A stretch of 64,000 nucleotides of DNA from Tubulanus polymorphus. Its lineage: Eukaryota > Animalia > Nemertea. The DNA is taken from the NCBI RefSeq assembly GCF_964204645.1, contig NC_134033.1, positions 15,384,655 through 15,448,654 on the forward strand, in the 5' to 3' direction. The position numbers and the translations under genes were made by a program. The notes under the pieces are model-generated. The model was given only the letters and a program-made list of their open reading frames with translations. It did not search any database and was not told where the DNA came from. Below are positions 13,601 to 19,600 of this stretch, piece after piece; within the stretch, counting starts at the first letter, position 1, and each line of letters begins with the position of its first letter.

Positions 13601-16600
13601 CAGTGCACAGTATTAACTGTCGATATGTTTTTATTTTTAGGACCGATGCGAAAACGAAGCAAATCGTCGCCGATCAATTCGACGCATGCGTATTCGACCT
13701 TTGTTCGAGGAATAAAAAGGGAAAAGCGAAACCGCAAGATTTGAAAACCGAGAACTGTCTTTACATGGAAAACGTCGCCAGACAATGCGAAGATAAGGGG
13801 CAAAAAATCAGCAATTTCAGAACCGCAGTATTTTGCCGTAAGTTACACAGTCGCTTCTTCAGACAATGTTGCGCCATCGATATACGGTGTCTAAACTTGG
13901 AACCTCAAAAGAAATAAGTTCAAACGCTTTTTCTATTTTCAATTTTCTACCGTTTCCAGCAAAGAAATGTCCACCGTTGTCGGCGTACACGCCACAAATG
14001 GCCGTGTGTGAGAAGACATGCGACGACCCGAGTGGAAAAAAATGCGCGCCAAAAGATAAAACCGAAATGATCGATGGCTGTAAATGTAACGGCAATGGTT
14101 TGAAACACGAAGGGAAATGTTACGCGACTTATGCAAAATGCCGTTAGTAATCTTGCCATTCCTTACGCCATATTTCATTCGGAAATAGTTATTCCGGGAT
14201 TTGTTTGCAAAGGATAGGCCTTAAAATCTGGACTGAATTTTGGTTTCACAGTTCTCAGCTGTTGAGTTTCCAACGCGTTACGACCCTAGGTCCAATTTTA
14301 TAGGCTGGTATTAGAAAAGACTTACTTTAAACTACTTTAAAGTTAATACCAGTAGGCTCTCTCAATACAGATTGATTCCTATTCGAAGAACTGATGAACT
14401 GACTCCCATTTTCTAAAAATGGTACCGGTTCCTGGGCGGTTCGATATAACTGTAAAACAAGAGCTAATTCTTGGTAATCGCTTTTGTGCCTAAACTTGGT
14501 TCTCAACTTGAATTGTGCCCGTATTTATAACTCGAAGAAGGTTTGTTATTCCTTTTCAGCCCCTCCGAAATGCGAGTTGAATAAAAAGGTTGGACCTCAC
14601 AGAACATGTATAGGTAAAGTAACTCAAATACTGACGAATTCAACGAATGCCAGAAACGGAATTCAGTAGTATTTTGAAATGAAGCCACGCAGAAAATACC
14701 CTCGCTCCTGATCAGCCCTTTTTGGAAAAGTGAAGAGGGCGGCAAGTTTTAATTTTTACCTCCCTTTTTTTTAAAATAGAGAAAAAGAAAAAGCCTTATT
14801 TCAAATTCCAATTCGAGTGACGAGGGCGATTTTTTTGGGCGTCAACGACCTTGAATCAGGATGGAAAGCACTTCGTTACCGGATTGCTCCCCTGCCACAG
14901 CAACAATGGAATAGCGACCCCGTGACTGTGATCAGGTGTTTTTTTGGGATGCGCGAGGGAGTGTTTTACTCCCAAAACCAAAACAGATTTCTGCATGTAC
15001 GGAATGTACATGAACATGACGGAATGTACATGTATATATATATATATATATATATATATATATATATATATATATATATATATATATATATATATATATA
15101 TATATATATATATATATATATATATATATATATATATATATATATAACACTCTAAACGGATGGAACTGGAATCATTTTTAGATAAATGCGACGCTAATGT
15201 TGGAAAAGAGTACGACTTTAAAACGAACCAATGCAAAGGTATTCATCGCAATTGAATCGTAATTAATCATCTTAAGTATTTGAAAATTAATCAACTTATT
15301 AAACGAATGATTACGTAAAGGCCCCCGCATACGAGCCGAAAACTGCGTACGCAAATGGCGCAGCACAGTTTTCGGCTCGTGTGCGGGGGCCTTAACGCGT
15401 TGTTTGGTAAACGGAATTTTTCAGATATGTGCAACAGAAATGTTGGTATGATATTTGACGCTCCCAGAAAACGGTGCAAACGTAAGTGACCGTTGAACAA
15501 CTGGGGCCGGTTTCACAAAGCGCAATTAACCCTTAATTATGATTAAATCACTAATCATGATTAAGGAAATTGAATCGTGATTTAGGTCCTAATTATAATT
15601 TAAGTTAATTATGCTTTGTGAAACCGGCCCCTGGTATTAGTAATTTGAAATACGTATAACCATAACCAAATTCGCTCTGAAACGGACGATTCAGTGGTAG
15701 ATAGATAGATAGATAGATAGATTTATTGCTCACAAAATTTACAAATTTGCGAAGAGCAAAAGCCAGTTACAAGATACATTATGCAAATTACAGACAATGA
15801 AAATTGACAGTACATACAATTGGTGGGCATATGTATGCAACAAGTGCATTATCTGGCATTTATGCACTTAGGTAACAAAGTATCTTAAACATGTCTGTAT
15901 ATATAAAATGAGGTTTTTAACGGTATAACGGATCATCACGAGGCATTTCCGTTGCTGGATGTATCATTAAGATATTATATTGTTAGAACTATGCGTACAA
16001 AAAATGGCTCTAAATGTCTGGGGCAATCGAGGTGTTTTCTGTGGTCAAATATTTTCGCTCAATCATCAATATTTCACTTCGATGGAAATTTCAAATAACG
16101 TGAAGGATTAACTACTTAGATATTGCGCTCTGTTGATCTTTTCAATAACTTTTCCATTTATTACTTTTAGCCTTGTGCGATGGACGGAAAGGTTTGGTAT
16201 TTAAAAACAAAGCTTGCTCGCGTAAGTGTAGAAATATCGATTTCGCCGAGGGACCTTTAGTTAAAGTAAATCGACACGTCATATTTCATTATCTTTACAG
16301 CGATCTGTAATTACGTTGGGACCGGTACAAAATGGGACATTCCAACTCAGAAATGCAAAGGTAAGGAAAACGAGTCATCCACCTATTGGAGTTGTGGTGA
16401 ACTATCCCAATCCTGGCCGGATTATGTTTCAAATCTATCGAAAATTTAGAATAAATATCGAATAAACTTGATGAGGACGAGCAGAATTTCGTAGGTTCGA
16501 AACTATTAATAACTGTTACTTATTCCGATTGTGCTAAAGAGGAATATTCACTTATGCCGTTACTAAATTGTATTCGAAAAATGATCACATTTGGAAGTAA

Positions 16601-19600
16601 ACCACAAAACAAAATGATCTTGTTCAATGTTCTCGGTAAATAACTCCAGTTATTTTTGCGACATTCCACAGATACGTGTAATTATCCAAATACAGGACAA
16701 AAATGGAAGCCAAGTGCTCGAAAGTGTTTGAGTAAGTACCGGAAATCTTGTCGGCTTTTTAAAATGAAATTCTTATCATACATGGGGCAAGGGTTAGAAA
16801 AGAATGGTCATAGATAGCTTTAACTCCTCTACCTTAAACGTTCCAGGTATTTGTACGAAAGCCACGTTGTGGTCGAAAGTCAATCAGAAATGTGAACGTA
16901 AGTGATCGATTTCAATTTTCTGATTCATCATAATCTTTTTTGGCATGCGTATTTTCCAACGCAATTAGTCGGTAATAACCTGAGGCAATCGATTGCGTAA
17001 TTTATTTCAAATTAGCGAAATGCGACAAACACAATAAAGGCGAAGAATTCGACGTGAAACTGAACAAATGCAAACGTAAGTTTTCAACGATCGAAGCATT
17101 TTATGAATAGCTACCATCGCTACCTTTCGGTTGGATGACGAACTAGCCAAGACCTTTTAATATAAGATGGCTTCCTCCATGGAATCCGCGGTGACGTCAT
17201 CAGCCATTTCGGCCTAGATAGCTGATGATGTCGTAGGGGGATTTCACCTCACATCTTGCCGTTACATTCTCAGAATAAATCGTTTTTCAGCAATTTGCGA
17301 AGAAAAGGACGCATTGAAATGGTCAGTTGCCACTCAGAAATGTCAAGGTAATTAGAAAAACGGATATTTCTGCTTTGGGAAGTATATTTCAGAGATATCG
17401 TAACTGCGTGTGGTATTTTTTTCAGCTATTTGCAAAGACTCCGAAATTTACATCGCGACCAGTAAAAAGTGCCTTCGTAAGTTTTCATAAAGAACAGTAA
17501 AGCTTGAATGAATGCTGAAACGGTTTGAACCATTACTCAACCGGGAAGCCATTTTGTTTTCAGCTCGGTGTAAACCGGAAGATGGCGTCAAATGGAACAG
17601 TCAACTGAAGACTTGTGTTTGTAAGTGATTCATTTATGAAAATTTCTTAATTTTACAATTTTTATGAAATGAATGGCCAATCAAATCTAGCGAAAGTTAT
17701 TCCAAAAAATGAAGGCGTTAATCACAAATTTTGTTTTGCTAGTAGAGTCGATTCTGAATAATTGAAAGGTAACTTAAGGTGCCGTTTTATTCCAGTATCA
17801 TAAATATAAAATGGCCAAAGGCTTATCTTTACGATTTGAAAGTTTAGAATTTGAAAAATAAGTAAATTTAAAGTAATTCTAGAAAAAAAATTAGAAAATG
17901 AATAAATAAATACCCGGCTATATAAAACCTCAATCACTTTTCTTACCGCCATTTTCGATGTTTGTTTCAGATATATGCAAACCGCCGAGCCACTTTGATA
18001 AACGAACTCGCAAATGTCTGTCTCCGCCACCGACACATCCACCACCAACAAAAAAACGTGACTATTTCATACTTAGCCCGTTTGTTCGGTCTATGTTGTA
18101 TCGATTACTATAGTTTATCGCAAATTTCCATTAGTCGTATGCATAGAATATGATACATCGATACATGTATAGTTTCACTATCTGGATAAGATTGAATTTA
18201 TTTCTCAAACATATAGACATAAGTATATGAATACGACAAATTTCATGATCGATTGAAAATTTCCCATATTTCAGATAAGAGGACACCCCCTCTGCTATGT
18301 ATATCTGTAGGGGGATGCCCTCTACAAAGAAAGATACAATAACGATGATATGATATGATGATATATACAGCAATAATTGCGACAGAGTCGAATAATGGTG
18401 ATGTATTATGAAGGCTGAAGGTTTGACTTTGTTTTTGTAGCTTCGCTTCCCGGAACCTCCGCTCAGAATGAACGAACTCCTAACAACATTAGTGCGTATA
18501 ACAACATTCTGTTATAGGATATAAACGTATGATCGAATAGATATTTAACATTATGTACGCGTTTCAATTTGTTACAGTTAAGCCGGCTGTGAACCCGGGG
18601 CATATCGAAAACCTAACTCCACATTTCCCGAAAGAATCGCCAGCAGGTATTTTATAGAAGGAGACATTCCGTTTGCCATAACTCGACGGGAAAGGCTCCT
18701 GATCGTGACCAACGCCACACCGTTAACACCGCCACCTGGCGGGTATTTTAGATATCTCGATTATAAAGAAAAGCATTCAATAGTGTAGATTCATATATGA
18801 ACCTTGGATTAAATCTTGTTATTTCGAAATCGATCTGTAGGGGAATGTCTTTTTTAAATTACCCTTTATCAATTTGTAATAATTCTTCTAGACTTAGCGT
18901 GGTTTGGCCGCCATTTTAGTTCACGTCACTTCCGCATTCGATCGTCTCAGTGACGTCACCGTGTTTTCCGTTGTTGTAGATTGTGAATGTACGATCGATG
19001 GCGATCCGCATTACGAAACGTACGACAACACGCTAATCGATTTCCAGGGAAAATGCAAATATCTGATGACGCAATTGATCGACGCTAGCGCCACTTGTCA
19101 GTTCAGCGTGGAAATAAAGAACGGCGTCATGTTCGGTTTGGATACTGTATCGTTTCCGTTGGAAGTTGATGTTAAAATCGATGTAAGTGATGTAGACGGC
19201 CTTTTGAGTAGGCCTACTGATAAAGATTGGAAGATGTATAGGAGCCCGCGTAGGATGATGCCTACTGATAGTGTTACAATCTAGTTTAAAACTAATAAAT
19301 GTGAAGTCTGGTATCGGGTAGTACTTTATAGGTTAACTTAACCTAATAGTTTCAGCTCATTTAACCGATTAAGTTACACTATGCAGTATAAGCGAATATA
19401 CCCCAGGTAACCTACGAAGTACAACCAGTCTTACTGAAGATACTGAATAAGTGAGTTTTTCGAGCCCATCTCTTGATAGCAAACCTTATCGATATTGTTT
19501 TTACTCTTATTCTAGGGAAACACTATTAGATTACTCCAAGGCGAGTACAAGTATCGCCTTAAACTGAAAGGACAAACCAAATTCGGCGCAATCATGAACG

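Follow-up and report, generated by a model that had tools for sequence, protein, structure and literature searches.

D assemblies, the sets of VWD, C8 and TIL domains present in gel-forming mucins, zonadhesin, the IgGFc-binding protein and the Macrostomum proteins Mlig-ap1 and Mlig-ap2, are known to multimerise in mucins and in von Willebrand factor. The gene studied here occupies about 11.2-22.1 kb, on the + strand, of a 64,000-nucleotide stretch of the palaeonemertean ribbon worm Tubulanus polymorphus (NCBI RefSeq assembly GCF_964204645.1, contig NC_134033.1, positions 15,384,655 to 15,448,654; the whole stretch is called the window in what follows, and its positions are counted from its first letter), and it resembles those proteins in having two D assemblies together with the GDPH and CGNC motifs. 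Unlike them, its protein does not carry a Pro/Thr/Ser (PTS) mucin domain or an array of EGF or TSP1 domains at the centre, but 12 units with two Cys each, which are predicted to be single-disulfide hairpins. A Cys-rich and Lys-rich composition with a central repetitive region, as in the window protein, has also been described for the glue proteins of flatworms (PMC6410801).

Disulfide-stapled beta-hairpin modules forming an extended and flexible extracellular rod have been described in Drosophila Dumpy (DPY), avian CREMP and Chironomus Sp185, where each module has four Cys and two disulfides in a Cx5Cx5Cx4C, Cx4Cx5Cx8C or CxCxC motif (bioRxiv 10.1101/2025.09.16.676614). In comparison, the unit of the window gene has two Cys separated by a loop of 10-15 residues, and no sequence relation to DPY, CREMP or Sp185 was detected when a natural run of such units was compared with Pfam and with PDB sequences. 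An earlier note on this DNA, made from the letters alone, had likened the units to the Cys repeats of the Chironomus Balbiani-ring-3 silk protein, a likeness that we reduce to an analogy, since BR3/Sp185 is made of two-disulfide modules with CxCxC and not of two-Cys units. A different precedent is offered by the schistosome micro-exon genes (MEGs), which encode secreted proteins through symmetric small exons that can be skipped in frame and whose alternative splicing is documented. Most MEG micro-exons are much shorter, and they make up most of a small protein, whereas the window gene has 12-13 consecutive symmetric exons of 51-87 nt, each encoding a whole structural unit and together representing about a fifth of the coding sequence. 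The micro-exon label given to them by the earlier note is kept here for their symmetry and small size, with the reservation that, at 51-87 nt, they are about as long as exons of this name usually get.

Twelve two-Cys exons and their paralog

The 12 small exons are a genuine coding part of a single + strand gene, in which two VWD-C8-TIL assemblies are separated by 12 two-Cys units and, after them, a short Pro/Thr/Ser linker. They are found at 14560-14613 (54 nt), 15182-15238 (57 nt), 15425-15481 (57 nt), 16171-16221 (51 nt), 16301-16360 (60 nt), 16672-16731 (60 nt), 16847-16897 (51 nt), 17016-17075 (60 nt), 17291-17347 (57 nt), 17426-17476 (51 nt), 17564-17620 (57 nt) and 17971-18057 (87 nt), all on the + strand. 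A scripted check agreed with the earlier note on the boundaries, phases and peptides of every exon: all 12 are preceded by a pyrimidine-rich tract and AG and followed by GT, have lengths divisible by 3, are in phase 1-1 with a frame that stays open from the third base, and encode units of 17-20 residues with exactly two Cys, one near each end. The donor is GTAAGT in seven of the 12, and weaker sites follow exons 2 (GTATTC), 9 (GTAATT) and 12 (GTGACT). At both borders of the array the phase is the same, with the donor at 14142 closing the upstream exon after the first base of a codon and the acceptor at 18980 opening the first VWD exon of the second assembly with two codon-completing bases. Every junction from 14142 to 18980 is therefore in phase 1, so that the array joins the two assemblies in frame and any subset of its exons would keep the frame, as had been anticipated from the symmetry of the exons.

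Such a layout rarely arises by chance in this sequence. A strict scan (AG, 45-69 nt of open frame with exactly two Cys, at positions 2 and -2, and GT) gave ten hits within 15182-17620, which are exons 2 to 11, and elsewhere only two unrelated hits on the + strand and one on the - strand, whereas 50 block shuffles gave 0.44 hits per strand with a maximum of two. Exons 1 and 12 were missed because of a PP prefix in the former, whose unit is also devoid of the aromatic residue, and a 12-residue Pro/Thr-rich tail in the latter. The encoded array is Lys-rich, in line with the earlier description, with 50 K+R versus 20 D+E in 222 residues. When the array was compared with itself at the DNA level, only marginal short matches at the exon ends were obtained, from which we conclude that the modules are old.

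A profile of the 12 units, compared with the worm's own genome, revealed exons of the same kind 1 Mb upstream in a second gene, paralog A (C9:14408000-14421000, - strand, where C9 is the contig holding the window), in which two VWD-C8-TIL assemblies enclose 17 clean two-Cys exons of phase 1-1. Open-frame pieces of the window were matched to this gene by tblastn in strict order, including the exons of the first D assembly (D1), units 1, 2 and 5-11, the linker exon described below and all exons of the second D assembly (D2). In this line, a colinear monotone chain over the unit-by-unit score matrix reached 256, compared to 178 +/- 19 in 2000 shuffles of unit order, none of which attained that value. 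Unit 1 corresponds to the first unit of paralog A and unit 2 has 65% identity to its second one, while units 5, 7 (65% identity), 9 and 10 are reciprocal best matches of the units with the same number; unit 6 matches paralog A units 5 and 6, unit 8 matches units 8 and 15, and unit 11 matches unit 11. As for unit 4, its best match is unit 17.

What has been kept between both genes is the protein and not the DNA, in agreement with what the earlier note had suspected from the divergence of the modules. Six unit pairs of equal length give a pN of 0.31 and a pS of 0.78, and since the synonymous sites are saturated no dN/dS ratio is given. Exon nucleotide identity is 0.61, whereas the flanking introns cannot be aligned and stay at the random level of 0.27, and what can still be aligned as DNA is limited to one unit and portions of five VWD, C8 and TIL exons. 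The units have thus maintained their frame, splice sites, Cys positions and individual character amid decayed surroundings, which argues for coding exons under purifying selection. Charge is a less constant feature, with the units of paralog A being near neutral (K+R 66, D+E 54) and those of the window strongly basic. At least nine of the units are older than an ancient duplication and have kept their individual character since then, and the whole set is likely to descend from a single phase 1-1 exon that was duplicated again and again until the two paralogs separated.

Downstream of the array, a probable 13th symmetric micro-exon (18441-18491, +, 51 nt, phase 1-1), with an open frame and splice signals, encodes a Cys-free Ser/Thr/Pro linker with 45% identity over 20 residues to a segment of paralog A at the matching place (E 0.008). 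A possible further Cys-free linker exon (18578-18646, +, 69 nt, phase 1-1) is suggested by its open frame and splice signals alone, and tblastn gave no match for it in paralog A. The introns within the array measure 78-689 nt and contain a (TA)n run and high-copy genomic repeats. The former is a microsatellite of about 110 bases at 15035-15146, between micro-exons 1 and 2, and the latter include two short elements at 15316-15393, a visible inverted repeat, and 15494-15637, which look like MITE-type transposons and over which the word depth in a genomic run reached about 1,000-2,100, versus 29 in adjoining single-copy sequence. Across 15863-19400, the only variant in the DNA contig of one run was C>T at 17990, a synonymous change at a third codon position of exon 12.

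The flanking D assemblies and other unit-bearing genes

The position of the array, as a coding part of one gene between two D assemblies, was borne out on both sides, by domain matches and by the colinearity with paralog A. Pfam searches with the flanking open frames found VWD, VWD and C8 upstream (11.2-13.9 kb) and VWD, VWD, C8 and TIL downstream (19.0-22.0 kb), and the domain pieces also fall in the expected order in tblastn comparisons with mollusc relatives. On the + strand, D1 starts with a VWD exon at 11230-11479 (Pfam VWD, 5.5e-11; tblastn matches to mollusc VWD proteins and paralog A), which has a phase-1 acceptor after the AG at 11228-11229 and a 3' end set by homology extent only. 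It is followed by the middle and C-terminal VWD segments, separated by an intron, at 12177-12338 and 12450-12605 (Pfam VWD, 2e-5; colinear in paralog A) and by C8 segments at 13103-13198 and 13624-13842 (Pfam C8, 6.5e-6; matched in paralog A), all with limits that are homology extents. D1 finishes with a TIL-like exon at 13953-14142, whose phase-1 donor is GTTAGT and which aligns with the TIL exons of both D1 and D2 of paralog A, with no Pfam match at E<=0.01.

Similarly, D2 opens at the phase-1 acceptor with a VWD exon at 18980-19186 (Pfam VWD, 2.4e-9; 62% identity to D2 of paralog A), where the 3' end is one among several possible donors. Further VWD segments follow at 19516-19755 and 20179-20346 (Pfam VWD, 1e-4; 50% and 43% identity to paralog A), C8 segments at 20661-20807 and 21243-21440 (Pfam C8, 5.5e-9; matched in paralog A), again delimited by homology, and a TIL exon at 21839-22021 (Pfam TIL, 1.9e-8; 54% identity to paralog A) that is the last recognisable domain, all on the + strand. 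GDPH opens the first VWD exons of both assemblies and CGNC is found near both VWD ends in the alignments. Altogether, Pfam PF00094 (VWD) is present in four exon pieces distributed over the two halves of the gene, with C8 and TIL following, which places it among the D-assembly proteins. It does not belong to the gel-forming mucins in the strict sense, as it has no long O-glycosylated PTS centre and no domain, such as the C-terminal cystine knot of those mucins, was recognised after the D2 TIL; its PTS-like content is restricted to the tail of exon 12 and the one or two short linker exons.

When the D2 VWD exon was compared by phmmer with 1.84 billion representative proteins, 611 hits were obtained, with identities of about 52% at most. 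The closest ones (about 45-52%) are proteins of bivalves, a chiton and a seisonid rotifer, named zonadhesin-like, IgGFc-binding-protein-like or uncharacterised; for the mollusc proteins with the first two names, identity in the VWD exon is about 40-50%. According to the earlier note, a described family with this architecture would take away the novelty of the array, but no run of at least four consecutive two-Cys units was found in the best 150 of these 611 relatives. No description of such arrays was found in the literature either; all these searches favour annotated proteins, so that absence counts as weak evidence.

Inside the genome of T. polymorphus, the array has more company. Two further VWD genes carry two-Cys micro-exons, five of them at C2:25210763-25211366 (+) and at least six at C9:16325016-16327352 (-), and the one-unit-per-exon array characterises a family of mucin-type genes in this nemertean rather than the window gene alone. 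The opposite layout is shown by a giant exon, an uninterrupted open frame of 10,875 codons (32.6 kb; C9:11766268-11798892, - strand) that lies between VWD domains and has two-Cys micro-exons on both sides. It encodes 542 two-Cys units mixed with blocks of Thr/Pro/Lys/Gly mucin repeats and is rich in K (15%), T (13.5%) and C (10%). In part, its units form a 29-residue repeat of one unit plus a Ser/Thr/Pro linker; in part, they are found within 274-residue super-repeats, where about 15 contiguous units precede a PTS linker, so that contiguous two-Cys units are natural in this exon. The mucin-type centre of the giant exon ties the two-Cys unit to mucus-type secretions.

Fold and family of the two-Cys unit

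A comparison of 40 units gave a loop of 10-15 residues between the two Cys, with an aromatic residue in 37 and a Gly in 30 of the loops. Natural contiguous unit runs of the giant gene, in which the spacers have a single residue, were used in the fold and family tests as a stand-in for the spliced array. AlphaFold2 modelled a 195-residue natural run (L014:665-1249, -) with a mean pLDDT of 76 and a pTM of 0.37, and each unit contributes two of the 24 short strands of the model. On this model, each unit is predicted to be a single-disulfide beta-hairpin, and a run of units would be a string of hairpins.

A Foldseek search of this model against the PDB retrieved nothing below an E-value of 0.001. 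The nearest shapes were those of EGF arrays (Pfs25, NELL2), Meckelin and TNF receptors, while the shape search in the ESM Atlas stayed at TM <=0.43 and the feature search led to an unnamed cluster labelled DUF5874/CBM_14, with values of 0.79 and 0.92. At the sequence level, no Pfam family was found for the natural unit run even at E<=10 and no match among PDB sequences, and the open frame of window exon 12 had no match in Pfam. Two partial resemblances did appear among the unit repeats, one of them a weak match to TNFR_nem and the other a match of the 29-residue repeat of the giant gene to CBM_14, which covers only positions 27-49 of the 53 in the model and owes its score to a sum over 35 repeats.

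The predicted hairpin of the unit, closed by Cys and bearing Gly and an aromatic residue in its loop, has this design in common with the C-terminal hairpin of CBM14, the hairpin that ends TIL and EGF domains, and the A1 module of TNF receptors. On the other hand, CBM14 and EGF have six Cys and TIL has ten, in contrast to the two of the unit, and none of these models matched over its full length. The likeness to the CBM14 hairpin pointed out in the earlier note is thus preserved as a resemblance in shape and motif, whereas membership is not, as the match belongs to one repeat subtype of another gene and is inflated by its 35 repeats.

Two family assignments were considered and rejected. CBM14/peritrophin-A (PF01607) comprises about 50-60 residues and six Cys, compared to two Cys in 17-20 residues, and its match is partial and confined to that single repeat subtype. 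For an EGF-like identity, no EGF family reached the cut-off on natural unit runs, the fold similarity did not exceed TM 0.43, and the Cys number is again two versus six. The unit is undescribed and, as a predicted single-disulfide hairpin, resembles the hairpins of CBM14, TIL, EGF and TNFR at the level of fragments only.

Function, alternative explanations and surroundings of the gene

The window gene probably encodes a secreted disulfide-rich protein of mucus, tube or glue with about 1,000 residues, arranged as a D assembly, 12 hairpins, a linker and another D assembly. Species of Tubulanus produce copious mucus and live in secreted tubes. Each exon would supply a structurally self-sufficient hairpin closed by its own two Cys, and the hairpins could align as an extended cationic rod, with a net charge of about +30, that would keep the two D assemblies apart. 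The latter may polymerise or cross-link as they do in mucins and von Willebrand factor, while the Lys-rich rod with its aromatic residues may bind the polyanionic (sulfated or acidic) glycans of the secretion. In this regard, the flatworm adhesive protein Mlig-ap1 has Lys/Arg repeats that adjoin its VWD/C8/TIL domains and bind anionic sugars (PMC6410801), which sets a precedent in a spiralian adhesive for cationic repeats combined with VWD/TIL and binding to anionic sugars.

Several observations weigh against this picture of a secreted hairpin rod. Upstream of 11230, where the phase-1 acceptor lies, no exon for a signal peptide could be identified, so that secretion is deduced from the domain types. 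The fold model comes from the contiguous units of the sister gene and not from the spliced array of the window, and we infer that Cys pair within units rather than between them. Moreover, units 3, 4 and 12 have no clear positional counterpart in paralog A. Among the sequencing runs compared with window 15150-19400, a range that starts clear of the (TA)n run and leaves exon 1 and the 14142 junction outside, three were genomic contigs that continue through the introns, with no spliced transcript, and a possible RNA run (2015) matched only the intronic repeat at 15588-15637, which belongs to one of the two MITE-like elements. Profile searches fared no better, as the one with the window exons as rows under a mollusc protein retrieved no Tubulanus model, and that with the 12 units as rows under the natural run retrieved no protein, probably because low-complexity words swamped the search. 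Together with the phmmer search, these yielded neither an annotated product of the window gene nor an orthologue.

The splicing of the array admits a further possibility, which would add to the hairpin rod and not replace it. Skipping of subsets of exons could produce rods of graded length and charge in the manner of schistosome MEGs, a suggestion that we regard as tentative and on balance doubtful. It is favoured by the common phase 1 of all junctions from 14142 to 18980, by the even number of Cys in each exon, by some weak donors (those of exons 2, 9 and 12) and by the variable number of units among paralogs (12, 17, 5 and at least six), which indicates that length is evolutionarily free. 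Nevertheless, the nine units conserved by position since the duplication suggest a regular use of each one, seven of the 12 donors have the consensus GTAAGT, and no support at the RNA level came from the runs examined. Furthermore, symmetric phase 1-1 exons are the norm among extracellular modules, whose splicing is mostly constitutive. An exon-per-hairpin code, in which each exon of 51-60 nt would stand for a self-folding, charged two-Cys hairpin in one common phase and gland cells would splice any subset of them and so set the length and charge of a cross-linker of mucus or tube, is a conjecture that we consider unlikely.

Other explanations concern the nature of the units themselves. If these were degenerate CBM14/peritrophin-A modules, the array would be a multivalent lectin for chitin or other glycans, and in this sense speak the 35 stretches of the giant gene that match CBM_14, the labels of the nearest ESM Atlas cluster (DUF5874 and CBM_14) by both features (0.92) and shape, and the aromatic residue kept in 37 of the 40 loops. 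We find it quite improbable, because each stretch spans under half of the model with an E-value summed over repeats, the other natural unit run had no match in Pfam (E<=10) or among PDB sequences, exon 12 matches nothing, two Cys stand against six, and the structural matches stay under TM 0.45, with EGF arrays just as near. Much further down in plausibility, the rod could be a polyprotein precursor cut into free cationic hairpin peptides with a single disulfide, similar to the arenicin-type antimicrobial peptides of annelids and released into the mucus. Units of 17-20 residues that are cationic, contain one disulfide and are predicted to be beta-hairpins would suit such a role, and nemertean mucus is known to contain peptide toxins (PMC6410017), whereas no regular dibasic or other processing site is found between units (the second Cys is followed by K, K, S, K, L, E, K, Q, L, V and L) and a structural polymer is suggested both by the two D assemblies that enclose the units and by the giant relative of mucin type. 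Finally, the exons could be non-functional relics or chance frames, with a messenger joining the D assemblies directly or with two separate genes instead of one. No transcript supports the array in the runs examined, direct splicing from 14142 to 18980 would be in frame, and no annotated protein containing such an array was found by the VWD and unit profile searches. However, the ten hits of the strict scan versus 0.44 expected, the conservation of frame, Cys positions, splice sites and order in a paralog with saturated synonymous sites and introns, and the recurrence of the layout in two further genes leave this last explanation with hardly any credit.

If the hairpin rod is correct, one hairpin of just 17-20 residues, closed by a disulfide, can serve by itself as a module of evolution and splicing, and phase 1-1 duplication would have produced rods with 5 to 17 units, placed between the polymerising domains of mucin-type proteins. 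Since this genome contains such units in two extreme arrangements, singly in tiny exons and as 542 copies within one intron-less exon, intron retention and loss in repeat genes, as well as exon definition for exons of 51 nt, become directly testable in this organism. Should the exon-per-hairpin code be true, the family would represent a natural experiment on many tiny exons versus a giant one. For biomaterials, an undescribed cationic hairpin-rod spacer would join the set of proteins of marine mucus, tubes and adhesives. Gene finders may miss exons of 51-60 nt of this kind.

Some features in the rest of the window deserve a brief description. A carbohydrate sulfotransferase 4-like gene is located at 41571-42906, 20 kb from the VWD gene, and a paralog of it with 80% identity is present on this contig; its single-exon open reading frame (ORF) at 42124-42906 has 100% identity to the NCBI carbohydrate sulfotransferase 4-like protein of T. 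polymorphus, a match that served to identify the species, as the assembly includes no mitochondrial contig with COX1. The presence of this sulfotransferase pair about 20 kb downstream could fit the idea of sulfated glycans and proves nothing. Just downstream of the VWD gene, divergent frames at 23608-24039 (-) and 25450-25903 (+) encode related small proteins, the latter opening with a signal-peptide-like stretch, in what appears to be an unrelated family of small secreted genes. Upstream, tandem repeats with a period of 17 residues (51 nt) followed by a long GA/AG microsatellite occupy 6329-7451 and explain the spike in GC and GC skew at 6-8 kb. Lastly, identical 104-codon frames on the - strand at 28450-28761 and 34801-35112 flank + strand ORFs of 355 and 670 codons (30179-33204), an arrangement suggestive of a young LTR retrotransposon whose two LTRs enclose gag-pol.

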